Shown piece after piece: positions 3,965-64,000 of a stretch of 64,000 bases of DNA. The DNA comes from Blepharisma stoltei ATCC 30299 (lineage: Eukaryota; Protista; Ciliophora). The number at the start of each line of letters is the position of its first letter. Positions within the stretch are counted from its first letter, which is position 1. The notes under the pieces were generated by a model. That model searched no databases. It saw nothing but the letters and a program-made list of their open reading frames with translations, and had not been told where the DNA came from. The stretch lies in the NCBI GenBank assembly GCA_965603825.1, contig CBFDEM010000032.1:124001-188000 (forward strand), given 5' to 3'. Position numbers and translations under genes: made by a program.

Positions 3965-3969
3965 AAAAA
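3965..3969 (-). terminator. RNA polymerase III oligo-T terminator of tRNA-Gly
   Basis: TTTTT immediately 3' of the tRNA discriminator base on the minus strand. Confidence 0.7.
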
Positions 3970-25410: not shown

Positions 25411-28400
25411 TTATTTTAATAAATTTTCATTTCTCAGGTCAATATTGGTACTCGGTACAATTGAGATAAGCGCTTTTAGCTTATTCAATGAATTTTTTTC
25501 TTTATAAATAAATGGGAGATACAAAAACAAAAATAGAAAGATTAAAGCTAAAGAAAAAGCAATTGTCACGAAAATCAGTAATTTTAACTGATCTTTGATT
25601 ATTTCTTTTGAATTTTTGTCAATAATATCGTAGTCACTATCTAGCGCAACTTGAAGAGCTGACTCATTACCGATATAGTTAGAAAAGTAAGGGACATTTT
25701 CTAAGCCTGAAGGGGTATTCGAGAGAAATCTCGCTTCAAGATATATCAGATTAGAAGCTATATAGCTCCCATGGTGCAAATAATAATCATTAGTGCTATC
25801 TCACTCCTCAAAAAGCCTAGTTTTCATATTTTGTGTCATCAAACTCAAAAAATTGCTGTTTCTTAACTTAGAGTTTTCTATTTTAAACTTCCTGCTTGTA
25901 GAACAGAATGCATTTTTTGATTGGGGAAGTGCATATGAGTTTGGGAACCATCTCAAGTTGCTTGTAGAAGCAATATCTCTAGCGAAAACACTCATTCGTG
26001 ATAATAGTGTTCGTTTTGTTATCAAATTTAGAATGAGTTTTGGTCTATCAATCAAATAATTTTCACACTTATTGTATAAATAGAACTGCAGAATAAAGTA
26101 ATAACATGCAGCTATGACTAGGAATATAGAAAGCCTCCAGAGATACTTAATATAAATTCTTGATTGTATTTTCTTTGTTGTTTTTAATCTTTTTGAGTAA
26201 ACCACTGGAGTTTGATCAGTTTTATAATCAATTCCATGTATTTTTAAAAGTCTGTCAATATAAATCGCTTTTAAATCTGCCCAGCATATAAGTGAAATTT
26301 GTTTTATAAAATTTCAAAATTCATCATAATATCTATTCATATAGATTGCATACCCTGCTAAAATCCCTATAAACAGCAGCAATAACCCTAAGCCTGTAAA
26401 TATTAAAGAGTTTATATATTTTCCAATATGCTTTACTCTGTTCACTTCGCAATCCACAAGATCATTCATTGCATTCTGTGTAACTTTATAGGTAAATCCT
26501 AGACTATTTAGCCCAAAGAATTTAACATCCTCCATTGTATATGTTCTATTGTTGCTGATAAGGTCGATTAAACTGTCTCCGTGTTTAATAAACAAATTGA
26601 TTTCATCATAAAAATTGAATTTAGATATATGAGTTGAAGGCTCGAAAATTCATACAGGAACAACATTGTCAACTACTATTTCTGAGCTTTTGCAGTAGCT
26701 TCAGTCGTCGTAGTCAGATAAGATGTAGCTCCGGAGATCTTTGAGTTTTGTTATTGTCGATTTAAAAGTTGCTAGATCTCGGGTAAGGTTGTAAATATTT
26801 GATTTTTTTTCGGAATCTATTGATCGTGCTAATTCAGCGGAATTCACCAAATGAAACATAAGAGTTCCGAAATGGGAAAATACATCAAGAGAACTAGTAT
26901 TAACTGTATCTTGGTAGATATACCCCAAAATCGCTATATTTGTGCCAATTACAGCTAGCATCTATATAAATTTTACACAAAATAATAAAATTCTTTCAAA
27001 AATTTTGAGATTTCTGAAAATTTTTCCAACATATTTGCTTACAATTGCTGCATGAAAATTACATGTAGAGGAATTTGATAAGCTGCTATGCTGGTTTTCT
27101 GATTTATCATCATTTTCGTCGTCTTTTTCACTTTTGGTTGATACCCGTTTAAGAAGTCTATTCATTTCAACATCTTTATCTTCTTCGCTTTGAATTTGCG
27201 ATTCCTCTAAAGATCGAAATGAATCAAGCTTTTGGAACTTCACTTTTGCCCCAGTTTCTTGGGAAAGAACTGATGTGTCTAAGTATGATTTTTCTTCTGA
27301 TGATGTATTTATTTCTGTTTTTTTAAAATATTCGATTTGATCTTTGTCTTCTCCAGCTTTTCATTGCTTAATTTCGTTATCGTTATAAACGATAATGATC
27401 ATATGAATTGTGGCTAATCTTAATTGCTTTGTTGTGTGGATTATAGCTAGCTTTCGGCCTTTGTGCTGGATGATAAGTGGCTTGAAAAGCTTATTTTCTG
27501 TTAGGTCAAGGATAGGGAGAAGCTCTGTTATACTATAATTTCTTACATTTGACAAGCCTGTCCCTAAATAGTAAGGAAAAAGATCTGTATAATTATAGAT
27601 AAGCCCTTCTGGAGAAATAATAGCGAACTGCCGACTTGTATTTCTTGGAGTTAAAGATACTAAAAAGTAAGCATTGTTATAATAAGCAGTTAGCTTAATA
27701 AGAAACATACATTCTACTAGATATCCAAGTGTGTTTTGAAGGAAAAATCATCCTTTATGAGGAGTTTGGTCATTTGTGTAATTTTTATAATACTCTTTCA
27801 TATAATCATCATGCTGGTATGAATAAGGGCTTGGTATATAATAATGTAAATGAGTTCCGATTAAGTCAGTAATAGAGCCTTTGAGCAGCTGCGAAGCTGA
27901 ATTATTCATATAGGTAATGATCCCAAACGATTTTTCATTAGCCGATATCAGAATAATCCCATTGCTTTCATCATAAGTTCCAAGCTTAGCATCATAGGCC
28001 TTTGCAAAGTTCAGCTGATGGCTAATCCCATTTTTCAATCTGTTAATAATTCTTGCTTGGTCAGTTTCTCCTAAAATGCTTTCCAAAAAAGAAATATAAA
28101 GATCATAAAGCTCCAAATGCTTATGTTTTACTACAAGCTTTGTATATACTTTTTTTAAACTTGACAAGAGATAAGAGCTTCTTATCACAAGGTGGTAAAT
28201 CTTTTTAAACTGTGGATTTCTTGCAGAGAATTCTGATCACAAGTCTATCAGTGTGCAGCAAATTTCTTCGTCTTGCTTTTTAATTTTGTCGAAATCAGCT
28301 AAATATTCTAAATAATTGATCTCAAGAGAAGAGGTGTCTCTTTCATTTATATTTTCAACAGCTCTTCATTCTTGGATAATTCCTTCAATTGTCCCTATTG

Positions 28401-29676
28401 CTGACTTTATTTTTGTCAATTTTATTCTTGCTAGAATTTCATCTTTCATCGAAAATGTGCAAAAATTTACTTCTCATATAACGAGCAATTTGTCTTTTAG
28501 CATCCTTTTATTTGTGTAGCATGCCGCGAAGTGGTCGAGAACCTCTCTTTTGTTTTCTAAAGTTTTATTGCAGAGTAAAGCTCTTATGGTTCTTTCGAAG
28601 TCATATTGACTTTCAAAAGAAACCGACTTTTTTTTGAGGTATTTAAATCTAGTATTAACAATTCAAAAGTTAATCAAAATTCATACCGGTTGCATAAAAA
28701 ATATTAGCATAAATGCAACACCTGCATTATCCATAGCAGCTGCTAATAAAACTGAAAATAATGTTAGTGTTACTGTGAATATTTTGCAAGATTTTATTGA
28801 GTTTTCTATTTCACTATAATATGTCAATTTTGTGAGAGATTCGAAATATATCCACAAATAAACAACTAAAAATGTAATCTGGTATTTGATAATATTTCCA
28901 TTTCCAAATAATATGTGTGAAATACTAAATAAAGTCCTGAGAGCCAAAAGTTTTAAGTCCACTGAGGAATGAGACCTTGCTGTCAAGTTTTTACTACAAG
29001 AATGGTGCCGAATATCTGCGGTGAATAACTCCCCAAAAAAAGCTATAAAAATTAAGAAAAAACTAAGGAAAAAGCATGCGAGGGCTCCGCCGATGCCATA
29101 GTTTAATAAATTCGAGTCTTTATTTCCTGGGTATTCGCATATTTTATCATTAGTAATTGCTGAATATTTAAAAATCATGGAGAGAATGACCAATGTAGGG
29201 ATATATAGTATAGATATTCAAACAGATAAAATATTTCTTAAAATCTGTATTAAGATCTTTGGAGTTTTTTTTTTGGTAAAGCTTAATAAAAACATTGAAG
29301 AAAATGTGCAAATACAATACCCTAAAATGGCAATAATCCCAAAAAACCAAATCTCTGTAATTTCGAACGCCTCAAAAAGGTTGTTCAGATTAAAATAACT
29401 TATTATGTTTCAGAAAGTAGAGTACCGATTTCACCCAGAAATATCCATGTCTGGATATCAAGCAAGCGCAGCAATCTGAAGGGATATAGTAATATTAAGG
29501 AAAGCTTCAATAATAATTTGTGATGAAATTTTATATCCACTCTTATACTTTGACTTGAAAATCTTCGCTAACAGCTTGAAAAAGCGAATTTTAGCTTTTT
29601 CCAAGGGCGTTTTCTTAGGTTTGAGCTTATTAATTTCTGTGTTTTCCAGGAGAGTTTCATTTGATCCTAATAGCAT
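25411..29676 (-). CDS. TmcB/TmcC-like multi-TM PAS protein, array copy 1 (~1416 aa, one intron)
   Basis: All track fragments share one frame, joined by TGA=W and a 15-nt intron; N-terminal TM bundle (ARSHSSVDL), helical region (HLELYDLYISFLESIL), PAS (GIITYMN..IPSPYSYQHDDY), four C-terminal TM helices. Confidence 0.85.
26962..26976 (-). other. 15-nt intron GTAAAATTTATATAG (copy 1)
   Basis: GT..AG, A at position 10, in-frame TAG, homologous position in all complete copies. Confidence 0.9.
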
Positions 29677-30168
29677 TTAATATTATAATAGACAATAATT
29701 TTAATTTAGTATTCATTTCTTTGGTTTTCAATAGAAACCTTTCTATTTTTTACCTATAAACTGTTCAGTCCACTTATTTCTACCATCATGGTTTCACCAT
29801 ATTATATAAAGCTAAAATTCGAAAACTACGCAAAAACTATTAAAGGATGATAAAAATATTAATTAGCCTATTTTAAAAATTTTTCATAATAACACAAAAA
29901 AAACTGCAGATTCATTTATTAAATTTATAATGGATTAAACAATAGAGACATAAATCCTAATAAAAAAGAATGATTGGGTATCTAGCTTGTAAAAAATTCT
30001 TTAGAAATTCTCTGGGATAATATATTTTGGCAAATCTTAAGCTGGCTGAAGATTTTGAAAGGTTTTTAATTTTTAAAAATAATTTAAAAAATTATGGAAT
30101 TTATTATAGTTACATTTTTTATAATTTTTATAGCATTAGTGTTTAATACTTACAAAAAAATATTATAA

Positions 30169-33100
30169 TTAGCTAGAGTTATTTTCACATTTTATATCAA
30201 CTCGAGAGCTTGGTATAATTGAAATTAGCACTTTTAGATTTGCTAACGAATTCTTTTCGGCATATATAAAGGGGAGGTAAAAGAATATAAATAGCAATAT
30301 TAAGGCAGAAGAAAATGCTGCAGTCACAAAGATAAGAGTAGTTAGTTGATTTTTTATAATATCCTTTGTGTCTTGGTCTATAATGTCATAGTCTATTGCC
30401 AATGAATTTTGAACAGCAGTCTCATTTCCTATATAATATCCAAATTGAGTTATACTAGACAAACCTAGAGGGAGGGTTGAAATAAATAAAGAATCTATGT
30501 GCATGATATTAGAAGCCAAATAAGTCCCATGCTTCAAATATTTATTATTTGTATCTCAATTCTCAAAAATTTTTTTTTTCATATTTTCTGTCATTAGCCT
30601 CAAAAATTTTTTATCTCTGATTTGAGAGTTAAGATTTTTAAATTGCAGGTTGCTTTTTTTTAGTTCAGCTGTTGAGTTCGAGACTCCATAAGAAGTAGGA
30701 ATCCATCTTAAAGTTGTAAGAGCGATTGTATCCCTTGCAAATACACTCATGCGAGATAATAATGTCTGCTTCGAGACAAGATTTAGCAATAATTTAGGAC
30801 GGTCCACCAGAAAAGTTTCACATTGATCATATAATTTAAAATTTAAAATAAAGTAATAGCATGAGGCTATTATCAAAAAGATAGAAAGTCTTCATATGTA
30901 TTTTATGTAAATCCTTGATTGTATTCGCTGAGAATGCTTTTTATTTCGGTGATGATCCTGGCTTGTGTCTGATACGTAATCGATTCCGTGTATTTTTGAA
31001 AGCCTTTCTATATAAGTTGCTTTTAAATCAAGATAAGACTTATGAAGCACTCTTTTAATAAAATTCCAAAACTGATCATATTTTTTGGTCATGTATACTA
31101 CATATGCAATGAGTACTCCAACAAAGATAGCAAGCAATCCTAGTCCAAAGAATATCCATGATGTTATTTCTACTTCAATATCTCTAACTCTAGCCACTTC
31201 ACAGTCCACCAAACCTTGCATTGCATTTAATGTAAATTCAAAAGTATAGCCAAAGCTATTCAAATTGAAAAATTTGGTATCAACATTTGAATAAGTTAGA
31301 TTGTTTTCCACCATTCTGACTAAACTTTCTCCGTGCTTAATAAATAGACCAACTTCATCATAAAAATTGAATTTTTCTATATGAGGTTTAGGCTCAAAAA
31401 TTCACACAGGAATTAGATCTTCTACTACCATTGAAGAGCTAGGGCAATAGCTTCATTGATCATAGTCAGTTAAAATATATTCTCTCAAATAAATCAGTTC
31501 AGCAATATTTTCTTTGAGATATCCTGTATCTCGAGTTATATTATAAATACCCGATTTTTTGGCAGCATCTATAGACCTTGATAAATCAGCTTCGTATACT
31601 AAATCGAACATCAAATTGCCCATATGAGAAAAAACATTAAGGGAGCTTGAGTGAATAGTAACTTGATAAATATACACAAGAACTGCTATATTTGTACCGA
31701 TAATTGCTAAGGTCTATATAAAAATTACACATATCAGCAAAATTCGCTGAAAAAGCTTCAGTTTTGCAGATAAAATATCGATGCTTTTATTTGCAATTGC
31801 TAAATAAAAAATACATGCTGAAGAACTTGTCATGCTGCTTCCTTGTACATTTGAAGCTGACTTTTCGTCGTTGTTTTCTAGTATGTGAGGGCTGTCTCTC
31901 ATGGATTCTTCAAGAAGTCTAAGGCATTCTGCTTCTTTTTCATCACTTTTATCGTTTTCTGCAAGCTTGTAATTAATCGTTTTTTGAAATCTAACATTTT
32001 GGGAACTATCTGTAGGTTTCAATAAAGAATTTTGGTCTATTCTGAGTTCTTCGTCTTCATCTATAGGTGTTTTTTCAAAGTATTCAATTTGGTCAATTTC
32101 TTGGCCATTCTTCCATAATTTTATTTCATTTTCGTCATGAACGATAATAATCTTATGGATTCTTGTAGCCCCAAGCACATTAATTGTATGGACCACTGCG
32201 AATTTTTTACCATTTTGTTGAATCATAATTGGCTCAAAAAGTTTCATAGAGGTTATGTCTAATCTAGGAATAATTTCAGATATATAGCTATTTTTGACAT
32301 TAGGCTGACTAGTTCCTATATAATAAGAGAAAAGTTCGGTGCTACTATGTATAATGCCTTCTTCAGATACCAGTGCAAATTGCCTATTTGTCACTCTCGG
32401 TATCAATGCGACTAAAAAGTATGCATTATTATGAAATGCAGTTAATTTGATCAGTAGGCCGCACTCAATTAGATATCCCAATGAATTTTGGAGGAAAAAC
32501 CATCCTTTGTGAGCAATTTCTTCTGTTTTATAGTTAGCAATATATTCTTTTACAATTTCATCATGGTTATACGCATAAGGGTTTGGTATATAGTTATATA
32601 AATGGCTGCCTATTAAGTCAGATAATGTGCATTTTAATTGTTGGGAAGCCTTTTCATTGGCATAAGTTATTATACCAAATGAATCTTCATTTGCAGAGAC
32701 AAGCATAATACCAGAATTTTCTTCATGAGAACCAAATTTTGAGTCATAAGCTGTTGAAAAACTTAAATGCCGGCTGATCCCGCTTTTCAGCCTATATATT
32801 GCGTTATTTTGATCAGTTTCTCCGAGCACATTTTCTAGAAAAGTAATATAAAGATCATAAAGTTCGATATGCTTGTATTTTAAAATCAGTTTTTCGTAAA
32901 ATCCTTTGAGGTTTGCCAATAAATATGAGCTTTTCATTGTAAGGAAGTGGATTTTTTTATATTCTGGGATTTTGTCTGAAAATTCTGATCACAAATCAAT
33001 CAATTCAAAGCATATTTCGCTGTCCATTTGTCTGGCTGAATTCAGGTCTTCTAGATATCTGATATAATGAGCATCCACTGATGATTTGTCTCTTTTGTCA

Positions 33101-34428
33101 ATATTTTTCTGAGTTTTTCATTCTTGTATGCATCCTTCAAGTGTAAAAATTGCAGAGTTTGCCTTGGTCAGCTTTATTCTTGCAAGTCTTTCATCTTTTA
33201 TAGAATATGAACAATAATTCACCTCCCAAATTACTAGTAATTTATCTTTTATAAATTTTTTATGGCTTAGGCAAGCTATAAAATAATCAATCACCTGCAG
33301 CTTGTTTTCCAAATTTGCATCACATAAAAAGCGCCTTATAGATTGCTCAAATAAAAATTGGCTTTTAAAAGTAATTTTATGCGAATTAATAATGTTGGTT
33401 CTTTTGTTAACAATAAGCACATTGATCATGGCCATCACAGGCTGCATAAAGAAATTTAACATAAAAGCAATCCCTGCATCATCAGCTACAGTAGCTAATA
33501 AAACAGCTAAAAATGACAGAGTAACTGAAAAAATTTTGCAAAATTTAATACAGTTTTCTATTCTGTTATAATAAGGTAATTTTACTAAAAATTGCAAATA
33601 TACAAGAAGCGAGCAAATCATAAAGATAACTTGATATTTGGCAATCTTTAATTTCCCAAATAAGACATGTGATAAGCTTAAAATCGTCCTAAAAGCCAGT
33701 AGCTTTAAGTCAACTGAAGAATGTGATCTTGCAGTCAAATTTTTATCACAAAAAGTGTGCCGAACGTCCGCTGTAAATAATTCTCAAAAAACAGACACGA
33801 GAATTAAAAAGATAATGAAAAGCACGCTGAGGATTGCTCCTGAAGGCCCAAAATTTATTGATGAAGCATCTATATTGCTAGAAAATTCATCAATTTTATC
33901 ATAGCTAAAAGCTGAGTATTTAAAAATCATTGTAAGTTCAAGAATAGAAGGAATGTAAAGAACTGTCGCTAAGCATGAGATCAAAATTTTCAGAGTTCAT
34001 ATAAAAAGGGCTGGAATCCTAATTTTCGTGAAATCCAGAAGAAAAGTTATTAAAAGCATCCCACTGCAGTAACCAAAAATGGAAAAGGTGCCGTAAGAGC
34101 AATAATCCGTGATACTGGAAATAGCACAAAAATTGTTTATGTTGAAATAGCTTATAAACCACCAGAACGAAGAATAATGATCTCATCTGGAGATTTTCAT
34201 ATCCGGATATCATGCCAATGCATTCATTTGAAAGGCCACAATTGTATTAAGCATAGCTTCAACAATTATTTGTGACCTAATAAGGTAATGATTGGTGGAA
34301 TTTGATTTAAATATCTTTCCTAGCAGCTTTAAAATGCGAAGTTTTTGTCTTTCCCATTGTGATTTCAGAGGTTTCAGTTTTTTGATTTCAACATTATCTA
34401 AGATATCTTCATTTGGGTCTATCAGCAT
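30169..34428 (-). CDS. TmcB/TmcC-like multi-TM PAS protein, array copy 2 (~1414 aa)
   Basis: Start MLIDPNEDIL matches paralog starts; fragments in one frame with TGA=W; same motifs as copy 1. Confidence 0.85.
31714..31728 (-). other. 15-nt intron GTAATTTTTATATAG (copy 2)
   Basis: GT..AG, A at position 10, in-frame TAG. Confidence 0.9.
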
Positions 34429-35945
34429 TTTATTTATAATAAGCAACAGAGGTGTTTTTTTACAATTTATCAACCAAAACAATTAGCCATTAGTATAAAT
34501 TTATTATAATAAAACTACCTCGATAATACTTCGTAGTATGCTGACTAATATTTAAATGCCATTCATTCTATAACAGAAATTTAAAATCTGTGTAAAAATT
34601 TTAAAATCTGGAGTAAAATGAGCTATTATTGATATTTTGCTAATATTTTAAGTAAATTAATAAGTGCAAATTTCCTCAAACAAAGTTGAAATATTTTTAA
34701 AAACTTTTTTTTGAATAGATAAAATTAACATTAGTTTAAGAACAAATAGGATTAAAATGGATAGGTCTGACAACATTGAAACAGAACTTTAATATTTAAG
34801 ACGAGTCTGAGTATAAAATTCGTATGAAAATAGTTATGGACTTGTTTTTTTTTTTGGTTCATAATTTAAACATTAAAGATTGAAAGCTTCATGACATCTC
34901 TGATCGAAATCTGATTCTATGGAGTTTATGATGAAAAGATTGCTTAGATACCATTCTTCGTTCTGCAGGGCTCAGAGATTACCGCCCTTGCATGCTCATA
35001 TCCCAGAGGGATCCGGCAGGCACCCTTCCTTCCTCCATGAAAAGCCTTACATAATTAGATTAAACTTTCTGGCTCGAGAGTCCTTAGGGTCTCGATTCCC
35101 CAGGGTACAATTCTCAGTATTGCACAAGTCATATTCTGTCTTGCAGCCTATGAGAAATATAAATCGCTCTACTCTCCAAGTCTCTCTCTGACCATTTACT
35201 TTCCAAGAATCACCGGAGGTAAAACCCATGTCCCGGCTATAGCGCTCTGAATACAAGAAAAGTTCACGCCCAATATATATCAAGGGTACTGTAAGTACTT
35301 CTTAGCTTGGCTTCTGCACTTCGGTGTTCATTGCAGGTGCTTCGAAAATTGTGCCAAGAGATCGAATAGTGGTCTCCACCATCTTAATGATTATAAGTTT
35401 ATAGTAGAAAGCTGTGCAATGAACAGGCTTTATCATTTAGTCTTCTTTCAGAGAGTCTGGGTTGGAATATGATGGGTTGACTAAGTCTTTATAGTAGCAA
35501 TATTAAGTATCAATTTAGAACCTATTATTTTTATGAAGGTTTAAAGGGATTATAACGTCTTTAAAAGTTTTAAAATTTATTTTACTGTGTCTTTCAGATT
35601 GTTATAATAAACTTTTATTAAGTAAAGAACTTATTCAAAGGATTGAAGATATCTTGATCATAGGCTGCGCTTCACATTACTGGTATTTTAAATTCTCTCA
35701 TGCATAGGTATAACTTTAATTATACAAATTTAATATTAAATTAATAGCTTGACACTTTCAGAAATGCCCTGAATGCAAAATTTATAATAAAGACTAACTT
35801 CTGCTGATTAAAGTATATAAAGATTATGGCAAAGATGCTTTCTACTTTTAGTAAGTCATGATGATATAGAAATCTAAATAAAATGCAGAGCAATCATATT
35901 TTTATTGCCTAAAAGACACTCCATAATAGTTAATTATAATTAAAA

Positions 35946-38900
35946 TTAAAACCACTTTTCACCTTTAAGATCTACTCGGGAGCTTGGTATAATTGTTATT
36001 AGCACCTTCAGATTTTCTAGTACAGCCTTCTCAGTGTAAATGAAAGGAAGATAAAAGAATACAAAAAGCAAAACCAAAGCCGAAGAAAATATAACAGTCA
36101 CATAAATGAGTAAGTTTAGCTCATTTTTTATAATATCTTTCGTGTCTTGGTCTATGATATCATAGTCCGTCCACAATGCTTTTTGGATAGCCGTTCCATT
36201 TCCTATATAGTTTGAAAAATCAGAAATAACGGGCTGACCTACATTTGAAATAAACTTAGAATCTATATACATAATATTGCAAGCTGCATAAGTTCCTTGC
36301 TTCAAATAGTAACTTTCTGAATCTCAAGCTTCAAAAATTTTGTTTTTCATATCCTCTGCTAATAAGTTTAAGAATCTTTTCTCTCTTATCTTATTAATGG
36401 AAATTTTAAATTCAGCATTACTTATGGTGAACTCTTTTTGGGAGTTGGCAACCGCATATGAATTAGGAACCCACCTTAAAGTGCTATTAGAAGCGGTATC
36501 TCTTGCGAATACACTCATACGGGATAATAATGTTCGTTTTGATATAAGATTTAATAACAATTTGGGTCTATTTATTAGAAAAGTTTCACATCTATCGTAT
36601 AAATGAAATTTCAAGATGAAGTAATAGCTTGAGGCTATGACCAAAAATATGGATAGTCTTCATATATATTTTAAGTAAATTCTAGACCTTATTTCTTTAG
36701 TTGGCCTTTTACTTCTGCGGTGGTCTTGGTTTTGGTCTGACTCATAATCAACTCCGTGTATTTTCGAAAGCCTTTCGATATAAGTTGCTTTTAAATCAAG
36801 ATAAGATATCTTGAGCGTTTTTTTAATGAAATTTCAAAACCTATCATAATTTTTTGTCATATAAACAACGTAGGCAATAAGGATTCCGACGAATGTGGCT
36901 AAAAGCGCAAGTCCAATAAAAATTCATGATGTAATGGCATTTTCAATCCCTATAACCCTATTCACTTCGCAGTCCACCAATCCTTGCATAGCCTTGAGCG
37001 TGATTTCGAATGTTAACCCAAAACTATTTAGATTGAAAAATCTTGTATCGATATTTGAATAAGTTTCATTTGTTTCTATCATTTTTACTAAATTGTCTCC
37101 ATGCTTAATGAACAAGGTAACTTCATCATAAAAATTCAATTTTTCTATATGAGGATTTGGCTCAAAAATCCAAACAGGGATTTCTTCTTTTACAACTATA
37201 GAAGAACTATCACAATAGCTCCACTCATGATAGTCGGATAATATGAATTCTCTAAGCTTCTTTAACTCTCCAAGGGTATATTTAAGATACCCTACATCCC
37301 GAGTTTCATTATAAATTCCAAATCTTTTTGCTGAATCTATTGATCTTGTTAAATCAGCTGAATATACAAGATGGAACATTAGGTTTCCCATGTGAGAAAA
37401 TACGTCAAGAGAGCTTGAATGGGATGTCACCTGATAAATATATACAAGCACTGCTATATTTGCGCTGATAACGGCTAATATCTATATAAAAATTACACAT
37501 ATCAACAAAATTTGTTGAAAAAGTCTTAACTTTCTAGATAAAACGTCAATGCTTTTATTTGCAATAGCTAAATATGAATTACTAGTAGAAGAATTTTGAA
37601 GGTTGCTTCCTTGAAAATTTGAAGCTGACCTTTCTTCAGTATTGTCTAAGTGGCTTGGATTGTCTTTCATTGTTTCATCAAGAAGCCTATGTGATTCTGA
37701 ATCTTTGCTATCGCTTTTATCATTTTCTAATGATCTAAACGCTATAGCTTTTTCAAATCTCACATTCGGCGTGCTATCAGCGGCCTCCTGAGATAGCATT
37801 TCTTGGTTCATTTTTTCTTCTTTTTCGTCTTTTATATGGACTTTTTCAAAATATTCAATTTGATCGATATCTTGCCCATTTCTTCATAATTTTATCTCTT
37901 TTTCGTCATGAACAACTATGATCCTATGAATTGCAGTCAGTCCCACTTTTTTAATTGTATGAACTATTGCGAATTTTTTACCATTTTTCCTTATCAAAAT
38001 TGGCTCAAAAATTTTCAGAGATGTAATATCTAAACTAGGAATAATCTCAGATAAATAAACATTTTTTAAATTTGGCTGATTTGCCCCTATGAAATAGGAG
38101 AATAGCTCAGTGCTGCTATATATAAGGCCTTCCTCAGACACCAATGCAAATTGTCTATTAGTGATTCTTGGTATTAAGGTTACTAAAAAATAAGCATTAT
38201 TATGAAATGCGGTTAATTTGATCGAAAAGCCGCATTCAATTAAACTTCCAAGACTGTTTTGAAGGAAAAACCAGCCTTTATGGGCTAATTCTTCTGTTTT
38301 ATAGTTAATGAAATACTCTTTCATAATGGTATCATGATTATATGAATAAGGGTCAGGAATATAATAGCGCAAATGGCTTCCTATAACATCAGACATTGTT
38401 CCTTTCAATATCTGAGAAGCCTTTTCATTTGCATAAGTAATGAATCCGAATGAATCTTCATTAGCAGACACAAGCATAATCCCAGAGTTTTCTTCATTGG
38501 AACCAAATTTTGAGTCTAAGCTTGTTGAAAAGTTTAATTGCCGACTTATAGCACTTTTGAGTCTATAAATCACATTATTTTGATCATTTTCTCTCAAAAT
38601 ATTTTCTATAAAAGTTATATAAAGGTCATAAAGCTCAACATGCTTATACTTCAATATTAATTTCTCATAAAATTCTTTGGTGCTTGCCAAGAGACTAGAG
38701 CTTCTCATTGAAAGGTGATAAATTTTGCTATACTCTGGAACTTTATCTGAAAACTCAGACCATAAATCTATTAACTCAAAGCAGATTTCGCTATCCATTT
38801 GTCTCACTTTGTTTAAATCTTCTAAATATCTGATATAATGAGCATCCATAGACGTGTTATCTCTTTTATCAATAATTTTTTGTGTTTTTCATTCTTGAAC

Positions 38901-40199: not shown

Positions 40200-40931
40200 T
40201 AGTTTTTAATAATCAACATGGTTGCTCTTTTTTACAATTCCAGTAAGAAATGCTTATTTTATTAACATTCAGTTTATTGGCAGAACCTTAACGTTTTTTT
40301 TTTGAATTATAAACTTTTTAAAGCTTCTGAATAAGAAAAATTAAAAGCATGATATTAAAAGAATACAATTGACTATTTTAATATTAAATCTGCTTAATCA
40401 TTCTTTTGAGCATGAGCTTATAATCACTAAAAAATATTTTAGGGTAAATTTATTATCAAAGAAAATAGCGAATATTATTCAAAAAAGCAATGCGAATTAT
40501 AGGGGTATGCCGAAAATGTCTTAGTGGAGCATTTTCATGCTATTTTATAATGTAATTTAAAATAGTTTCGTATAATTTGCTATTTTGTGCTTGGTATGAT
40601 AAGAGCCAGCTTATTTATTATGCAAGTTCAATTTTATTTATTTGAAAGTTTTGAATTAATTGCATGATATTAAAGTCTTGCTTAATTTAGCAACATCAAT
40701 TTAGCGAAAATAAAAAAGAGTCTGGCACTTATAATTTTGAACATTTATGCACTTGTAAAATTACTATAAAGAAATAGGATTTTCATTGTTTAGAGCTCAT
40801 TAAACTTTCCATTCTGCTAAATTTAATTCAATTTTCTTCGAAGAAATGAAAAACTAATTCATACTTTCAAGAGAGCGGTTCTAGCATTTAATGCAATCAG
40901 AGATTTATCAATTATAGTTAATTATAATAAT

Positions 40932-52414: not shown

Positions 52415-55400
52415 CTAAAGCTTTTCAGAGATCAAATCATCCGAGTTTTTGATGATTGACATTAATAATTTCAGCTTTGACAATCAACATTTTTCAGAAT
52501 AAATGAAAGGATGATAAAAAAATATATAGAGCAAAATCAATGCTGAAGAAAATATAACAGTCATGTAAATAAGCTTATACAGTTCGCTCTTTATGGTATC
52601 TTTTGAATCTTGGTCTACGATGTCATAATTAACCCCAAAAGTTTCTTGAAGGGCTGTTTCATTTCCTATATAATTTGAATATGCAATGACAGTCCCTATG
52701 TTAGCGGGAGTCACTGATATATATTTAGCTTCCATATATATAATATTAGCAGCAACATAAGTTCCTAGATGCAGATAATAATCATCAGTTCTGATTGTTT
52801 CAAATCATCCTGTTTTCAAATCATCTGATAATAATTTTAAAAAATCCTTGCTTCTTAATTCATGATTTGAAAGCTTAAACTCTTCACTGCTTGTGGAGAA
52901 TTCTAGCTTTGAAGATGCAAGCCCATATGAATTGGGAATCCATCTCAAATAGCTTGATGTGCCAATATCCCTTGCAAAGACACTCATACGTGATAAGAGC
53001 ACTCTTCTTGCTAGTAAGTTTAATAGGAGCTTTGGGCGATTTATTAAATAGGTTTCACACTGGTCGTAAAGTGAGAATTTAAGAGTGAAATAATAGCATG
53101 AAGCTATAGCTAAAAATATGGAAATTCTTCAAATATATTTTATATATAGTTTTGAATGTATTTTTCTATAATATCTTTTTATTTTGGGATAATGATTCTC
53201 GATATTATTATCTTTTGAATAATTAACGCCATGAACTTCTGATAATCTTTCAAGGCAGCTTTCTCTTAAATAAAAAAAGGAAATTTGTGATGATTGGTTA
53301 ACAAAATTCCAAAAATTATCATTGCTTCTTGCCATTAAAATTGAGTATCCGATTAAAATTCCTGTAAAAATAGCTAAGAGGCCAAGCCCCACAAATATTA
53401 AAGCTGTTATCTTTGTATCAGTTTCTTTTACCCTATTAACTTCGCAATCCACCAATCCAGACATTGCTCCATGAGTAAATTCAAAGGTATATCCGAAGCT
53501 ATTTAAACCGAAGAACCTTGCATCAACATTTGAATAGGTCTTATTTTGAGCAATCATATTTACCAAATTATTTCCATGCTTTAAAAATATGCCAACTTCA
53601 TCATAAAAATTGAATTTTTCTATATGAGGCGAAGGGTCAAAAATTCATACAGGGATCACATTTTCTGTTACAATTGAAGAACTAGAGCAATAGCTTCAGT
53701 CATTGTAGTCAGATAAGATATATTCTCTCAAGTTCTTTATCTCATTTAGAGTATACTTGAAGTAGCCGAAATCTCTTGTAAGATTGTATATGTTAGACCT
53801 TTTTTCTGAATCAATTGATCTTGCCAAGTCAGCAGAATTTACAAGATGGAACATTAATTTTCCAAAATGAGAAAATATTTCTAGATTACTTGAATGAGTT
53901 GTAACTTGGTAAATATACACGAGAACTGCTAAATTTGTACCGATGACTGCTAATATCTATGTAATTATTACAGATAAAAGAAGAATCTTTTGGAAAATTT
54001 TCATCTTTCTTGAGAGTGCTTCGATGTGCTTACTTGCGACTGCTGAATTAAAATTACTTGTTTTCGTGTTTGTAACACTAATTTGCTTTGATTTTTCTTC
54101 AGTTTTATTTAAATTATTATATTTTTTGCTAGGCTTTTCATCAATAAGCATATTTATCTCTTCTTGCTTTTCTTGGCTTGTCGAAATTAGTGGTATAAAT
54201 TCCTGGTTTTTGGTGTCCAAGAAATCGAATGTTGAGCTTTGAGTAATTTTTTCCAAATCCTTTTGCGACAATTCTATTTTTTTAAAGTATTCAATTTGGC
54301 TTATGTCTTTCCCTACTTTCCAGAGATTAATTTCTTTTTCATCATGAATAATCAGGAGCATATGAATGGTTTTTGTTCTTAATTCTTTTACTGTATGAAC
54401 TATGGCTAGATTTTTCTCATTTTTCTTAATAATTAGTGGCTCAAAGGGTTTCATTTCTGATATGTCTAGGTGAGGGATAAAATCTGAAATACACAAATTT
54501 TTAATGTTTGTCGTCGATGCTCCTATATAGTGGGAGAAAATCTCTGTGCAGTTGTATATAACTCCTTCTTCTGATATGAGGGCGAGCTGCCTACATGTAG
54601 TTATTGGACTTATAGATACTAAAAAGTAAGCATTATTATGAAATGCTGACAATGATATACGAAATCTGCATTCTACCAAGTATCCCAAAGAGTTTTGGAT
54701 AAAAAACTGCCCTTGATGAGCTATTTCTTTATCTATATATTCAATGAAGAATTTTTTCATAATAAAATAATGATCGATTGAAAATACACTAGGAATATAA
54801 TCATGCAAGTCAGTTCCCACCAAATCAGAAATAGTTCCTTTTAGCAATTGAGAAGCTTTACTATTGATATATGCAATTGTGCCAAAACTATTTTCATTAG
54901 CTGACACAAGCAAAATGCCACTGTCTTCGAAAGAAGATATATTTGAATCATAAATTGTTGTAAAACTTAGTTGATGGTTTATACTTGCTTTAAGTCTGCT
55001 CATGCTGCTTGCCTGATCAAATTCACCTAAGATATTTTGCAAAAACGTTATATAAAGGTCGTAAAGTTCTAGATGCTTATGTTTTGCGATAAGTTTACCA
55101 TAAAAATCTTTAAGCTCTAATAAGAGTGTGCAGCTTTTGATTGCCAAAAAGTGGATTTTTTTATATTGAGGAATACTTGCTGACAATTCAGATCCTAAGT
55201 CCAACAGTGTGCAACAGACTTCAAAATCGTGAGCTTTGGTATTCTTTAGTTCTTCCAAATATTCTATATAAAGAGAATCAGTTGATGAATAATCCCTTTT
55301 GTCAATAATCTTGATTGCCTTTAATTCTTGAATAGTCCCTTCCAAAGTAGGCACTATCGATTTCTTTTTCGTCAGTTTAATTCTCGCTAATTTTTGGTTC

Positions 55401-56626
55401 TTCAAAGAAAATGAACAAAAATTAACTTCCCAAATAACAAGTAATTTGTCTTTTATGATTGTCTTATTTGTGTAGCAACCTGAAAAATAATTAATTACTT
55501 GAGCTTTATCCTCTAATTCTTTATTGCAAAGCAAATGTCTTATGGATCTTTCAAATTCATATTGATTACTATCATTTACAACAGAATGTTTTTTATTGGC
55601 AATCTTTGTAATTAAAAATCAACTGACAATTATAGCACTAATAGGCTGCATAAAAAAATTCAGCATAAAAATAATCCCTGCATTATCCATTGCTTTGCCT
55701 AGCATAACTGAAAATAATGATAAGCACACTGAAAACATTTCACAAGATTTTATACAGTTTTCAAATTTGTTGTAATAAGGCCATTTCCTTAAAAATTCTA
55801 GAAATATTCAAAAGGAAGCTATTGTAAAAGTAACCAGAAATCTAATAGGTTCTGTGTTTCCAAAGGAAACATAAGATATACTCATTGCAGTTTTGAAAAT
55901 TAGAAGCTTTACATCTACTGAAGAGTGGGCTCTGACAGTCAAAATTTTTCTCCAAAGACCATGACGAGTATCAGCAGTAAATAATTCTTGAAAAAAAGCC
56001 AAAAAAATCAGAAAAAATATCAAAATCGGGCTTACTAATGTTCCAAGGACTCCATAAGCGAGTAAAGAAGGATCATGACTTCCATACAGCTCGCAAACTT
56101 TATCATAATTAAAAGTTGAGTATTTAAAAACTATAGAAAGTTCTATCAACGAAGGCACATATAATAATGTCGTTCAAACTAAAAATAATATTCTTAAAAT
56201 TTTAACAAGTAATTTAGGGATCTTAAGTTCTGTAAATTCATTCACTAGCATTAGTAGCAATGCTCCAAAGCAAAGCATTAAAATGGAAGCAATAAAATAA
56301 AAACATAAGTCCATAATGCCAAAAAAGCTGCAAACATTAATAAGGTTAAAACAACTCACGAATTTTCAAAAACTGGTATAGCGATTTCATTCAGAAATAT
56401 CCATATCTGGGTATCAAGCTAAGGCTATCATTTGAAAGGATAAAAGGGTATTAATAAAAATTTCAACCAATAGCTGAGTATTCATGCTAAAGCCTTTGCT
56501 GTATTCTGACTTGAAAATTTTTCTGAATAATTTAAATATATGTATTTTTCATTTATTAAGCAGCTTTTCTTGATAATTGAGCTTTTTAGAGCCTTCTAAA
56601 ATTTCTGCTGGGTTGTCTGATAACAT
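52415..56626 (-). CDS. TmcB/TmcC-like multi-TM PAS protein, array copy 6 (~1398 aa)
   Basis: Start MLSDNPAEIL (ATG 56624-56626, not in track); ends LKLLMSIIKNSDDLISEKL-TAG at 52415; single frame with TGA=W. Confidence 0.83.
53957..53971 (-). other. 15-nt intron GTAATAATTACATAG (copy 6)
   Basis: GT..AG, A at position 10, in-frame TAG. Confidence 0.9.
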
Positions 56627-57413
56627 TTTTATTGTTTAATTAAGGGATTATACAGCGACTTAAAAAAATATTCGCAGTTTTTATTTGAAGTTACAGAATC
56701 AGTATATTTGGTTTTAAATATTATAAAATTAGAATTACTAAATCTTATAATAGCTTTAAGCTTATTTCTTATTTGGATTTAAAATTTTAATCAGTTTACT
56801 TTTAGATCATAGCATAGACAATTTTTGTTATATATGATCACTTAAGGATTAAAGATTATCTGTAGTGATGAATATATGTTGTTTTTAAATTAGGAGCAGT
56901 TTTACTTTTAAGAGAAAATAGTCATAGAAGAAAACATTAATTCTAATCCAGCATCGAAATGCACTGAGTGCTAAAGCTTAACAAAAATAAATAAACTTTA
57001 GTATTTTCGAGTTTTAGATAAACTTGAAAACTATAAATTATTTAAAAATCAAATCATACTCAGAATAATAAAATTGAACAATTAAATTTAATAAATTCTA
57101 TGAATTGAAAAGCTAAAAAAGTCAGACTCCTTAAGTATCATTATGAATTGGCATAATTTTTATAATATATTGGGTGCAAAAGAAGATCATTCATAGCGTC
57201 TAATGCATCACTCATCCTCGTACCAATTCTTATGACTCATGAAGTGCCAACAAAATATTCTGGAAGCATTATAGCTAGCTATCAATATCGTTATATTACT
57301 AATAGAAAAGCCACTATAAAGTGGACATATTTAGCTTTCAAAATGATAACTCTTATTTAATTAAATTTGAAATAATTGCAGGAAATAATTTATCTTAACA
57401 AAAAATATAGAAT

Positions 57414-60400
57414 TTACAGCTTTTCAGAATTCAATTCCCCACAATTTTTGATAATCGACATTAATAATTTCAACTTTACCAGTGAACGTTTTTCATAATA
57501 AATAAAAGGAAGATAAAATAGCATATATAGTAAGACTAGAGCTGAGGAAAATATCACAGTCACATAAATGAGCAGATTTAGCTCCTGATCTATAATCTCT
57601 TTTGAGTCCTTGTCTATAATTTCATAATCTTCCCCCATAGCATTTTGAAGGGCTGTTTCATTTCCGATATAGCTTGAGTACACAGGGACAGAGGCATTAC
57701 CAGAAACAGTGACCGAGATAAATTTAGCATCGATATATAAAATGTTAGAAGCTGCGTATAGGCCTTGTTTGAAGTAATGATCATTAGTATTCCTCTCTTC
57801 AAAAAACCTTTTTTTCATATCATCTGACATTAAATTTAAGAAATCTTTTTTCCTTAAATCAGAATTTATGGCTCTAAACTCTTCATTGCTTGAGTTAAAT
57901 TCATTTTTAGATGACTCGACTGCATAAGATTTTGGAAATAATCGCAAATTGCTTGACGTGTTAATATCTCTTGCAAAAACACTCATACGCGATAAAAGCG
58001 TTCGTTTTGTTATTAAATTGAATAGAAGTTTTGGACGGTTTCACAAATGATTTTCACAATGATTGTAAAGGTAAAACTTTAAAATAAAGTAATAGCATAA
58101 AGCTATAGCTAAAAATATGGAGAGTCTTCAAATGTATTTTACGTATAGCCTTGACCTTATTGCTCTGTAAAATGTTTTATTTTTGTAATGCTCAGCACCG
58201 CTATTTTTTGAATAATCAATTCCATGCACTCTAGAAAGTCTCTCTAGACAAGCCTCTCTTAAAAATGAGTAAGACATCTGTGATGACCTTTTAACTATAT
58301 TCCAAAAATAATCATTACTTTTGGTCATTAAAATTGAATACCAAACTAAGATCCCAATAAATATAGTTAATAAACCAATTCCTACAAATACTAAAGCTGC
58401 AATCTTTCTATCAGTTTCTCCTACCCTATTAACTTCACAATCTACTAGCCCTGCCATTGCTCTATGAGTAAATTCAAATGTATACCCAAAGCTATTCAAA
58501 CCAAAAAATTTAACATCAGGATTTGTGTTTGACCACGGCTCATTGTTAACAACTGTATCAATTAAACTGTCCCCATGCTTTATAAATATGCCAACCTCGT
58601 CATAAAAATTAAAATTTTCTATATGAGGAGAAGGATCAAACATCCAGACAGGAATCACATTATCTGTTACTATTGAAGAGCTAGAGCAATAGCTTCAATC
58701 ATTATAGTCAGATAAGATGAATTCTCTTAGATTCTTTAGCTCATTTATAGTTTCTTTAAAATACCCTAAATCTCTCGTGAGGTTATAAACATAGGATCTT
58801 TTTTCAGAGTCTATTGATCTCGCTAAGTCGGCTGAGTTTACTAGATGGAACATTATGTTTCCGAAATGAGTAAAAACGTTAAGAGAGTTTGAGTGAGCTG
58901 TTACTTGATAAATATACACAAGAACTGCTATATTTATAGATATAACAGCCAATATCTATATAAAGATTACGCATAAAAGAAGAATTTTTTCAAAAACTTT
59001 TAGTTTCCTAGATAGAATTTCAATATTCTTATTAACAATTGCTATATAAAGCTTACTTGTTGCTGAATTTGATACACTGCTTCCCTGAATGTTTGATGTT
59101 TTTTCCTCAGTATACTCGAAATGATTTAATCTTTTTTTTACATCTTCACCAAAAAGTCTATATGTTTCTTCTTGTTTTCCATGATTAGGAGACATTACAG
59201 GAGTAATATCCATGCTTTTTAACCCCACGTCTAGATAGTTACTTGATATATATTGTCTAGCTTTGGCTTCCTCGTTGCATACCAATATATTTTTTTTAAA
59301 ATATTCAATTTGGCTTATATCTTGTCCGTTTTTTCATAAACTTATTTCTTTTTCATTATGAACAATTAGAAGCATGTGAACGTCTGTTGTTCTAAGCACT
59401 TTTATTGCATGAATTATTGCAATCTGCTTTTCATGCTGCTGAATAATTAATGGCTCATAGGGTTTCATTTCTGATATGTTTAAATGAGGAATAAAATCTG
59501 TTATGCAAGAATTTCTAATACTGCTTGCAGTTGCTCCAACATAATGAGGGAAAAGCTCTGTGCAATTAAGTATAACTCCTTCCTCGGATATCAATGCAAG
59601 CTGCCGATTCACATTTATTGAACTCAAAGTTACTAAAAAATAAGCATTATTATGAAATGCTAACAATTTTATCCGAAATTTGCACTCGACTAAATTCCCT
59701 AAAATATTTTGGATAAAAAATAGCCCTTGATGTGATATTTCCTCTTCTATATATTCTATATAAAAATTTTTCATATAATCTTTGTGATCGAGAGCATAAA
59801 TACTTGGAATATAATCATGCAAATCAGTTCCTATCAAATCCGAAATTGTCCCTTTTAGCAGCTGAGATGCTTTATCATTTATATATGCGATGATACCAAA
59901 AGCATTTTCGTTAGCTGATATAAGTATGATACCTTCATCTTCATCAGAAAATATATTTGCTTCATAAAGTGTTGAGGCGCTCATTTGGCGACTTACGGCT
60001 CCTTTTAATCTATTTATATTACTAGCTTGGTCGCATTCTCCCAAAATATCTTGTAAGAAAGTAGCATAAAGATCATAAAGCTTCATATGTTTGTGCTTAG
60101 ATATTAGCTGAGCATAAAACTCTTTAAGATTTAATAAATATCCGCAGCTTTTGATAGCAAAATGATGAATTTTATTATATTGTGGAATCTTCGCCGTCAA
60201 TTCCGACCATAAATCTAACAATATGCAACAAATTTCGAAATCTTGAGCCTTTGCTTTATTTATATCTTCTAAATACTCTACATAAAGAGAATCAATTGAT
60301 GAACTATCTCTTTTGTCAATAATCTTCAAAGTCCTCAATTCTTGAATTTTTCCTTCCAATGTAGAAATTATCGATTTTTTTTTTGTTAATTTTATTCTTG

Positions 60401-61655
60401 CTAATTTTTGGTTTTTCATAGAAAATGAACAAAAATTGACCTCCCAAATAACAAGCAATTTATCTTTGACTAGTGTTTTGTTTGTGTAACAATCTGAAAA
60501 ATAATTAATGACTTTTGTTTTGTCTTCCAAGTTTTTATTGCAAAGTAGATGTCTTATCGATCTTTCAAATTTATACTGATTCGTTGTGTTAACAGGAGAA
60601 AAATCGCTATCTTTATTATTTTTAGTCTTTATAATAGTATATCAGCAAGTAATAAAAATACTTATAGGTTGCATAAAAAAAACCAGCAAAAATATAACCC
60701 CTGCGTTGTCCATAGCGTCTCCAAACAAAACTGCAAAGAATGATAAAGACACAGTTAAAGCTCCGCAGGATTTTATAGCGTTTTCAAATTTGTTATAATA
60801 AGGCACTTTTCTTAGAAACTCTATGAATATCCAAAATGAAGCTATCATGAAAAGAAATCGAAATTTAATAGCATTTTCATCTCCAAACGAAACGTAGTTT
60901 ATGCTTACTAAAGTTTTGAAAACTAAAAACTTTAAATCTACTGAAGAATGCGCTCTTACAGTCAAAATTTTTCCTCAATGACTATGCCGGGTATCTGTAG
61001 TGAATAATTCTCAAAAATAAGCTATGAGAACTAAGAAAATAATTAAAAATAGACTAGTAATTGCACCAAAATTTCCATAATCAAATAATTGAGGATTTGT
61101 ATCTCCAGGCATCTCGTAAGTTTTATCATAGTTAAAAAATGAATATTTAAAAACCATAGAAAATTCTACTAAAGAAGGAACATATAATACAGTCGCCCAA
61201 ACTAATAGTAGTTTTCTCAATAATCTAAATAATAACTTTGGCATTTTAAACTTTGTGATTTCCAAGCCAAGCATCACAATTAATGCTCCAGCACAAAATA
61301 GTAAAATGGAGGCAAAGGAATAGAAGTAAATTTTCATAATTCCAATAATACTAAAAGCCTTCGTTATATTGAAAAAACTTATAAACTGCCAAAAGCTTTT
61401 ATAACGTTTTCACCCAGAAATATTCATATCTGGGTACCAAGACAAGGCTATCATTTGGAAAGCTAGGAGAATATTTACCATAACTTCAATCAACAGTTGA
61501 GTACCCATTCTGTAGCCTTTCTTATATTCTGATTTAAAAACTCTTCCAAATAACTTAAAAATGCTGTTTTGTAATTGATTGTGCAGCGATTCTTCATATT
61601 CAAGCTTTTTAGATCCGATATCCTCAAATGTCTCTTCATAGTAGCCAAATAACAT
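57414..61655 (-). CDS. TmcB/TmcC-like multi-TM PAS protein, array copy 7 (~1408 aa)
   Basis: Start MLFGYYEETF; single frame with TGA=W; most similar to copy 6. Confidence 0.85.
58956..58970 (-). other. 15-nt intron GTAATCTTTATATAG (copy 7)
   Basis: GT..AG, A at position 10, in-frame TAG. Confidence 0.9.
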
Positions 61656-63029
61656 ATTTATGACTTATTAGATGATTATGGTGACAAATGAAAAAATAAA
61701 TTGAAAACTTTAAAACTTTCTGATCTCAAATTTACTATCAGAGTTTTTGCGGACATCTTTTGTTAGAGAATAATACTTAGTTTAAGCCAAAAAATATGGG
61801 CTAGGGAATAATTTTCTTAAGTCGTTTTTCCGTGAAATTGAAATATATGCATGCTGATAACTCTCTGAATTATTTTTTAGTAGAAAGCAAGTCAATGTAG
61901 ACAAAAAATATTAAAAATTATAGGAGCTTTTTCATAGTGCAGAGCATTCTTATTCTATAATAAGATAAATACTTGACTAATGTATAAATCAACTTAAAGC
62001 AAGTATTATAGCATTTATCGTTTAATTAGAGTAATTATTAATTTTATATTTCACTTAAATAATTAAGTCTTAAACTATTCGTCATTTATACAGCTTGGCC
62101 CATCAAGCTATTGACAATACATAAGAAACCGCATCAAAAAATTATCAATTTTATAGGAATTTTGCTTATATGGTGATTCATCCTAAACCTTTTATCATTT
62201 CTGCCAGAAAATTATATTAAAGTATCGTAAAAATGAATAAATTTAGTGTAAGAATCATAAAATAGTTTGTTGTTCATTTTTATTAGATCAAAAATCAACA
62301 AAGCATTTGAGTTTTTTTGGCTTAATCCTAGCTGAAAATATGATTTATAAGCTGTGTGGCAAGCGATAAGCCCAAATAAAATCATCATTGCATCTCGCCA
62401 AAATTCCAAGTATTTGAGGATTCTTATTCAAAAAGTTTTGAACGTTATCATAAAAGCTATGTGTATTTTCTCAAGTATAGCAAGACAAAATATTTTATTG
62501 CTAATATAGATACTTAACCTTTTATTTACTGAGCGGACTTTGATCCCTAAAAGCGACAGAAATCATAATGCCTTAGAATTAAACTTTTTGCATTTTTGAA
62601 TTTTTTAACTTCTTTAAATTATAAAGAAGATATTTATTATATACCCTCAATAAAAATTAATTTTAGCCAAAATGGAAAGATAGCTCAATTATCTTATGAA
62701 GAATTTATCTGGATAAATTAAGTCCTGTTATTAATAGTCTTCTCGAAATTTATAGTGCTTGCTTTTAAAGATTAATTAAAATTATAAATCTAATAATCGA
62801 TCTAAAATTATTTTAAAAATGTAATAGATCACCTAACAATAAAAGCTCAAACTCTAATTTAATTAATTTTTTCTTCTCTATACAGTATAAAATTCTCTAT
62901 AAAAGTTATGGTAGACAGCTATACTATATGTAAAAATTGCAAATAAAGATTGTTAAAGGGTAAGCTTAATTTTTGTCCATAAGATTCAAAAATAAAGCTC
63001 AGCGAGCTATATCAGTCTTAATATATTTA

Positions 63030-64000
63030 ATGAACTTAGATTCCAAAGAAGATTTGCTGGAGAGCAATGACGCTTTAAAATTCCAATACAAGAAATCATC
63101 CTTTGAGAAACAAAAAAGTCGCATTTTTAAGCTATTTGGAAAAATTTTAAAAGCAAAATACAATTCAAGCTACAAGTTAAAGTCTCAAATAGCAATAGAA
63201 GTCCTCCTCAATGCTATAATTTCTCTTCAATTAATTGCTTTGGCTTGATACCCAAATATGAGCATTTCAGGATGAAGTAGCTATTCAAAGTTTTGGGACA
63301 CAATCAGCATTTTTAACATAAGCAATTTTTGTGGCACCTATGAGATTACTGATTACTGTTTTCATGGGATTGCCTCCATTTTATGCTTCTGCTTAGTAAC
63401 ATTTTTAGGAATGTTCTTTATTGGATATACAAAGTATGAAATTCCAAGGATTTTATTTTGGGTATTAAGAAACTTATTGCTATTTTGTGTTACAGTCTTG
63501 TATATACCTTCATTAATTGAGCTTACATTGGGTTTTAAATATTCCACTTTTAGCTATGAGAAAATTGGTGAATATCCAAGCAATAAAAATTCCGAAATTC
63601 TAAATAAAGGGTCCATGGGAACTATAATGGGTATCATTTTGATACCATTTTTGGTATTTATAGCTTATTTTTGAGAACTATTCACGACAGATACAAAGCA
63701 TATCCTCTGAGATAAGGATTTAAATGCAAGGTCACACTCAGCAGTTGATTTAAAATTTCTAGCGTTCAAGACCTTATTCAGTATCTGCTATATATTAATT
63801 GGGAATGACAATATTGTTACATATCAGATGATTTTCATGGTTTTTTCTTTCTGAATATTTTTAGAATATTTGATGAAATTGCCATATTATAATATTATTG
63901 AAAACTCAATAAAATCTTGTAAGCTGCTATTAGTATCTGTATCATTATTAGCAGTTTTATTAGGAACTATGATAGATAATGCAGGAATTATTTGTATGCT
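63030..64000 (+). CDS. TmcB/TmcC-like protein, array copy 8 (5' part, inverted orientation, runs off the window)
   Basis: MNLDSKEDLL..IFKLFGKI..LQLIALAWYPNMSISGW..LYIPSLIEL..ARSHSAVDLKFL..LPYYNIIENSIKSCK, homologous to the N-termini of copies 1-7. Confidence 0.85.

Follow-up and report, generated by a model that had tools for sequence, protein, structure and literature searches.

A tandem array of TmcB/TmcC-family genes encoding putative two-input membrane sensors in the ciliate Blepharisma stoltei

A 64,000-nt stretch of the Blepharisma stoltei ATCC 30299 macronuclear genome (positions 124001-188000 of contig C32 in the 41.46-Mb assembly of 64 contigs; hereafter the window, whose own positions serve as coordinates unless a contig is named) carries seven complete minus-strand paralogs, g1 to g7, and the beginning of an inverted eighth, g8. 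These genes appear to be a locally duplicated, constrained clade of the TmcB/TmcC family, whose products we interpret, with a probability of roughly 0.6, as membrane sensors with 12 transmembrane (TM) helices and two inputs. The array itself is real, intact and correctly assigned; its genes have already been deposited publicly and are hence no discovery in themselves. New here are a domain-level model, with heme-PAS and four-helix-bundle hypotheses, for what has been an "uncharacterised TmcB-like protein", and errors flagged in three public gene models. To our knowledge, the molecular basis of ciliate perception of chemicals, oxygen and mating signals is largely unknown, and most classical receptor families are lacking.

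Gene structure, integrity and history of the array

When TAA and TAG were taken as the sole stops and TGA was read as Trp, long open reading frames (ORFs) were found all along the window. Seven pairs of abutting minus-strand ORFs in the same frame (about 900 plus about 514 codons) extend over 25411-29676, 30169-34482, 35946-40205, 40932-45185, 46201-50445, 52415-56635 and 57414-61664. The single in-frame stop of each pair falls in a 15-nt GTA...TAG intron at a phase-0 site conserved in g1-g7. All seven genes have another conserved 15-nt intron (GTA...AG, phase 1), placed 86 nt upstream of the stop-containing one. Because it is frame-neutral and stop-free it is invisible to ORF reading, and it was revealed by the public models of g2, g3, g4 and g7. 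A preliminary description of this DNA, made from the sequence alone, had allowed for one intron per gene; the count is two.

The seven complete paralogs occupy 25411-61655 and encode 1393-1411 aa each. The phase-1 and stop-containing introns are found, respectively, at 27048-27062 and 26962-26976 in g1 (25411-29676; 1416 codons with intron 1 left in; public model P0163), 31800-31814 and 31714-31728 in g2 (30169-34428; P0161, 1409 aa), 37568-37582 and 37482-37496 in g3 (35946-40199; P0159, 1407 aa; the copy modelled structurally), 42560-42574 and 42474-42488 in g4 (40932-45185; P0160, 1407 aa), 47829-47843 and 47743-47757 in g5 (46201-50445; P0165), 54043-54057 and 53957-53971 in g6 (52415-56626; P0001), and 59042-59056 and 58956-58970 in g7 (57414-61655; P0162, 1403 aa). 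All seven were recovered full-length in the window by tblastn, which also matched the first 323 aa of g8 at 63030-63998. This inverted paralog (P0003, 1402 aa) contributes its first 323 codons to the window (63030-64000, plus strand) and continues past the window end to C32:191241. The seven same-strand genes and inverted eighth of the preliminary description are thus borne out by ORF pairs, spliced coding sequences (CDSs) and tblastn alike. Its "at least eight" holds for the genes that begin in the window, and the array runs further (see below). That the genes are hidden by TGA is true under the standard code only; they are already present in the GenBank/UniProt annotation.

The spliced CDSs of g1-g7 contain no in-frame TAA or TAG over 1398-1416 codons, which removes a reservation of the preliminary description, and 8-15 TGA codons each. 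In alignment columns containing TGA, 40 of 111 cells from paralogs hold TGG (background 0.6%), and TGA in these genes is therefore read as Trp. Both the 15-nt introns and this reassignment agree with the published B. stoltei genome (41 Mb, 25,711 genes, 15-16-bp introns, UGA = Trp; PMC9942806).

Both introns are spliced in five of the seven public models. P0165 (g5, 895 aa) and P0001 (g6, 884 aa) break off at the stop-containing intron, which they leave unspliced although it is canonical, and P0163 (g1, 1245 aa) is missing its first 166 residues, including three predicted TM helices. Judged from the sequence, the public models of g1, g5 and g6 look wrong.

The copies are far from identical. 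Pairwise protein identity among g1-g7 is 51-70%, with g2, g3 and g4 at about 70% and g6 and g7 at 65%, and synonymous divergence (dS, Nei-Gojobori) is saturated at 1.2-2.5; they are therefore not assembly duplicates. The overall ratio of nonsynonymous to synonymous divergence (dN/dS) among the window copies is 0.12-0.19, which, because dS is saturated, shows constraint only qualitatively. By domain, dN/dS is lowest (0.06-0.17) in the TPR region, PAS domain and module 1, highest (0.2-0.36) in the linker, and well below 1 throughout. These values support the view, already put forward in the preliminary description, that the copies are intact and probably kept under purifying selection. The most variable part among them is the linker, not the ectodomains.

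The whole array spans C32:149.4-212.7 kb and comprises 12 genes and one 255-nt fragment; no family copies were found in the 45-kb upstream flank. In a phylogenetic tree g1-g8 form one clade (support 1.0) in which physical neighbours are closest relatives, a pattern of local tandem duplication. Their sister genes are two on contig C38. Identity to the window clade is only 31-37% for the four genes beyond g8. An insertion of ~1.73 kb interrupts the eleventh array gene (C32:200815-206670, beyond the window) between residues ~493 and ~499, and an 85-codon (255-nt) family fragment comes after this gene at C32:206885-207139.

It is extremely improbable that the window copies are duplicates in decay or without transcription, or that they arose as an artefact of assembly. 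The early ends of the g5 and g6 models and the missing N-terminus of the g1 model could reflect poor RNA support, and the split gene and fragment show disruption close by. However, the reading frames of all seven genes are open, both introns keep canonical GTA...AG ends, in g5 and g6 included, and dN/dS is low in every domain. Intronarrator takes introns from RNA-seq. This pipeline was used for the published B. stoltei annotation (PMC9942806), and the splicing of both introns in most public models is an indirect hint that array copies are transcribed. Assembly duplication, which the preliminary description had named as a possible objection, is excluded by the 30-49% protein divergence; taken with the intact frames and dN/dS, it led us to reject pseudogenes or an assembly artefact as an explanation of the array.

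Membership and extent of the TmcB/TmcC family

The resemblance to TmcB/TmcC proteins, noted in the preliminary description, proved correct. The Pfam model PF25474 (TPR_TmcB; gathering threshold 27 bits) matches the window copies at 21-30 bits, and exceeds the cut-off in g7 (28.6 bits) and g3 (28.0 bits), both scored in a six-frame genome search, and in g8 (P0003, 29.7 bits). Matches to g1, g2 and g4 are sub-threshold (21-26 bits), yet these are paralogs with 51-70% identity. Weak Pfam PAS matches lie beside TPR_TmcB, and no further Pfam match was obtained across ~900 residues of the window proteins. UniRef names them either "TmcB/TmcC TPR repeats domain-containing protein" or "PAS domain-containing protein". 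By profile and name, then, the window proteins are members of the TmcB/TmcC family.

Genome-wide, PF25474 yields at least 149 matches, ~138 of them over the cut-off. The count misses the true members g2, g5 and g6, which were not reported at E<=0.01, and the family is therefore larger than 149. When a 553-aa piece of g6 was compared with the genome, 78 matches were scored among 190 candidates. Larger arrays are located at C17:366-554 kb (at least 30 matches), C4:32-197 kb (at least 27) and C35:401-490 kb (at least 14), with a spacing of ~4.5-5.5 kb. The window array is an ordinary example of a very large family, and neither the largest nor special in the genome. It shares family, gene size (~4.2 kb) and tandem organisation with the other B. 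stoltei arrays (C17, C4, C35, C46, C25), but forms a distinct subfamily that is at most 37% identical to most of these, its nearest relatives being the two C38 genes. At ~4.3 kb for each of at least 149 matches, the family makes up an estimated ~1.5% of the 41-Mb genome.

In an exhaustive profile search, 687 relatives reached E<=1e-3 and 98 reached E<=1e-30; many measure 1350-1440 aa, and their sources are Blepharisma, the heterotrich Fabrea and environmental eukaryotes. Word-based homolog searches found only Blepharisma and environmental relatives, and returned no named protein from Dictyostelium, Stentor or Tetrahymena. Conservation of the family extends to distant protists; Carpediemonas, for example, has it (PMC8516963). 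In Dictyostelium, tmcB affects cAMP signalling in macrocyst formation (sexual development) and shows late induction in hypoxia (PMC12750705). The Blepharisma proteins resemble this "tiny macrocysts" family in having a TPR_TmcB domain, a multi-pass membrane architecture and a PAS domain that follows the TPR region. They differ from Dictyostelium TmcB, the only source of functional data, in their expansion (at least 149 matches, arranged as tandem arrays), and are linked to it by the Pfam model and UniRef names only.

Predicted architecture and the PAS domain

Two AlphaFold2 models of g3 were built on 81-sequence alignments. The model of residues 860-1407 has a predicted local distance difference test (pLDDT) value of 90.2 and a predicted template modelling score (pTM) of 0.84; for residues 1-1200 these values are 83.7 and 0.70. 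Together they reproduce the layout of the preliminary description, from an N-terminal TM bundle through a helical/TPR-like region, PAS and a variable linker to two modules in which a helical domain stands between TM helices. They also sharpen it, in that the "multi-TM" N-terminus is a bundle of eight TM helices in the model.

The 8-TM bundle (g3 residues 50-349; 39153-40052, minus strand, as are all g3 features below) consists of eight long helices and matches no Pfam family. It is followed by a cytosolic helical-repeat region (residues 357-557; 38529-39131), which includes the TPR_TmcB match at residues 453-554, by the PAS domain (residues 566-700; 38100-38504; strands at 573-677), and by a second beta-rich domain (residues 701-785; 37845-38099). 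A disordered stretch at residues 787-867 corresponds to the variable linker. In the C-terminal part, very long helices leave the membrane, form two helical bundles and return to it. The module 1 ectodomain (residues 910-1079; 36933-37442), between TM9 and TM10, is a four-helix bundle with a beta-hairpin insert, and the module 2 ectodomain (residues 1191-1354; 36108-36599), between TM11 and TM12, is likewise a four-helix bundle. The cytosolic helical loop that joins TM10 to TM11 (residues 1101-1171; 36657-36869) contains the family-invariant Arg1133, along with the highly conserved Leu1134, Trp1112 and His1138.

The two modules are acidic (net charges -8.8 and -5.9), and the TM10-TM11 loop (+5.0) and C-terminal tail (+3.2) are basic. 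The predicted helices and this positive-inside bias argue for 12 TM helices with the N-terminus inside and the bundles directed outward; most likely, each protein spans the membrane 12 times and has a cytosolic N-terminus. A GPCR-like (G protein-coupled receptor) 7TM bundle was considered for the N-terminus and rejected, given eight helices at residues 50-349, a charge bias that places the N-terminus inside, and no Pfam 7tm match in 78 members.

Modules 1 and 2 match each other end to end when their 81-sequence alignments are compared with hhalign (probability 84%, E 7e-6, 204 columns), which suggests an old internal duplication; no similarity between them is found with the seven window copies alone. 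In the predicted topology each has its four-helix bundle on the non-cytosolic side, between two TM helices. In this respect they resemble bacterial extracytoplasmic four-helix-bundle sensors (the NasR NIT domain, McpN, NarX/NarQ, Tar, PcaY and TorS), from which they differ in having no HAMP, kinase or MCP signalling domain downstream. A Foldseek search of the PDB with the C-terminal model of g3 gave no significant match. In the fold comparisons de novo designed bundles score ~12, helical bundles reach ~13 by arrangement alone, and only the top rows exceed noise. Since designed bundles score nearly as high, the likeness to bacterial sensors is one of fold and topology and does not establish common descent. 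A TTYH/prominin-like C-terminal fold was also examined and discarded (Foldseek E 0.02-0.4, TM-scores 0.11-0.17; absent from the top 50 VIA-align rows).

The PAS domain expected from the preliminary description was recovered both as a fold and as a sequence-profile match. With Foldseek, the g3 PAS and second beta domains jointly match tandem PAS-A/PAS-B proteins (HIF-2a/ARNT, PpsR, DosP; E ~1e-5, 250-330 columns). When the family PAS profile was compared with all PDB sequences, RmFixL ranked first (E 2.4e-7), followed by EcDOS (5.5e-4), DosP and a heme-PAS transcription factor, all ahead of the many non-heme PAS entries. In the alignment a conserved histidine (His622 of g3/P0159; 38334-38336) falls on the proximal heme ligand of both FixL and EcDOS, which we take to be His194 in RmFixL and His77 in EcDOS. 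It lies at the start of the AlphaFold2 helix 622-631, as a proximal histidine on the Falpha helix would. All eight window copies have this proximal-type histidine, as do 68 of 80 family representatives, and its flanking hydrophobic positions are conserved too. From this alignment the domain seems FixL/DOS-like, with a histidine placed to ligate heme, and it may bind heme.

There are also differences from the bacterial proteins. Identity between the window PAS and FixL (Rhizobium/Bradyrhizobium) or EcDOS/DosP is only 14-16%. FixL couples its PAS domain to a histidine kinase and DosP to GGDEF-EAL, whereas the window proteins have no recognised catalytic output. A second histidine, g3 His640 (~38280-38282; motif xHKGW / xHQGx), is present in seven of the eight window copies and replaced by Lys in g5. 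In the profile alignment, which is uncertain in this loop, its column stands opposite Met95, the distal heme ligand of EcDOS; if the alignment holds, this hints at a six-coordinate heme in the subfamily.

The 8-TM bundle is the basis of the main rival reading, by which the proteins would be regulated transporters or ion channels, with the bundle, perhaps together with the four C-terminal TM helices, as permeation path and the PAS, TPR and bundle domains as gates. Twelve TM helices and no enzymatic output domain would suit such a protein, as would conserved polar or helix-breaking residues within TM helices (Gln67, Pro160, Lys170, Asn292, Pro330). There are weak Foldseek rows to the membrane proteins TTYH, EAAT and MATE (E 0.02-0.5), and a language model points to a TRP-type cluster from fungi and algae (score 0.83-0.84). 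However, all these similarities are below significance (TM-scores 0.1-0.2, Atlas scores <0.9), no Pfam family of transporters or channels comes up repeatedly among 78-81 members, and no internal repeat, direct or inverted, was found between the halves of the bundle. Profiles of the N-terminal bundle and of the C-terminal half found no matches among PDB sequences. On this balance a transporter or channel is unlikely. The TRP-type channel family PF06011, as an identity for the N-terminal bundle, was dropped, the language-model lead having no support from hidden Markov models. The Atlas fold search returned only the TmcB family itself and generic multi-PAS proteins.

Candidate sensory function and genomic surroundings

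The order of parts in the models (a membrane bundle of eight helices, the TPR scaffold in the cytosol, a PAS of FixL/DOS type followed by another PAS-like beta domain, the disordered linker, and two outward modules of the form TM-four-helix bundle-TM) makes a sensory role plausible. In the mechanism that we propose, an external ligand would be read by the outward four-helix bundles, as in bacterial chemoreceptors and histidine kinases with periplasmic sensor domains, and the signal might travel along the uninterrupted TM helices to the conserved helical loop in the cytosol, with its invariant Arg1133. A gas or redox signal would be read by the PAS domain. Both inputs would then be integrated and relayed via the TPR region and/or the 8-TM bundle to a partner.

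Several observations weigh against this two-input sensor. No output domain (kinase, cyclase, phosphodiesterase or channel pore) is recognisable in Pfam scans of the window proteins and of 78-81 family members. Among the window copies the ectodomains are no more variable than the TM bundle, and there is thus no signature of ligand-driven diversification. Neither the full-length proteins nor 81 C-terminal segments gave a sequence match to 4HB_MCP, NIT or the NarX P-box at E<=1. The conserved histidine is absent from 12 of 80 family representatives, the orientation of the proteins is read from charge bias and predicted helices only, and the dN/dS values are rough. The preliminary description had gone further and called such clustering and diversification typical of chemosensory receptor repertoires. 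By analogy, such a repertoire would fit the tandem birth-and-death pattern; the lack of an output domain and the position of the most variable segment do not bear the claim out.

A quite improbable alternative is that the proteins are structural or membrane-organising components of ciliary, cortical or pigment-granule membranes, with the bundles serving adhesion or membrane shaping and the expansion serving dosage or surface variation. A list of cilia proteins includes one from Chlamydomonas described as "tiny macrocysts protein B-related" (PMC11244166), the weak Foldseek rows to TTYH would be in keeping with such a role, and the family has the great size often seen in surface-protein families. 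Against this, TTYH and prominin do not appear among the top 50 VIA-align rows. Moreover, across 85 family representatives the TPR-PAS core is best conserved, and the TM bundle and modules are somewhat more variable. A purely structural role can hardly explain why the best-conserved part is a cytosolic core with a heme-PAS-like motif.

The sensor reading could be extended to the whole family, although we regard this as doubtful. TmcB/TmcC proteins might be eukaryote-wide dual-input receptors, with two extracellular four-helix bundles and an intracellular heme-PAS, that signal through the TPR region and 8-TM bundle without a classical catalytic output; in Blepharisma, ~150 such genes would then be the main chemo- and oxygen-sensing repertoire. 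In proteins of which ~900 of 1,400 residues are without domain annotation, the structural reading makes the putative heme-PAS, the two small soluble bundles and loss-of-function phenotypes experimentally addressable.

Upstream of the array, 1-25211 contains ordinary housekeeping genes. These include, on the minus strand, genes for a dihydrouridine synthase (1829-2515), tRNA-Gly(TCC) (3969-4042), a cullin (8728-10626), a PP2C phosphatase (14247-15218), a PB1-domain protein (17954-18565) and a DEAD-box helicase (23592-25091). Four further ORFs of 320-500 aa in this region are without a Pfam match (12975-13937, 20997-22505 and 22577-23548 on the plus strand; 15991-16965 on the minus strand). Within the array, the 1.5-kb spacer between g2 and g3 (34429-35945) has a GC content of 0.31, compared with 0.17-0.25 in the other spacers, and contains short ORFs of 60-107 codons.

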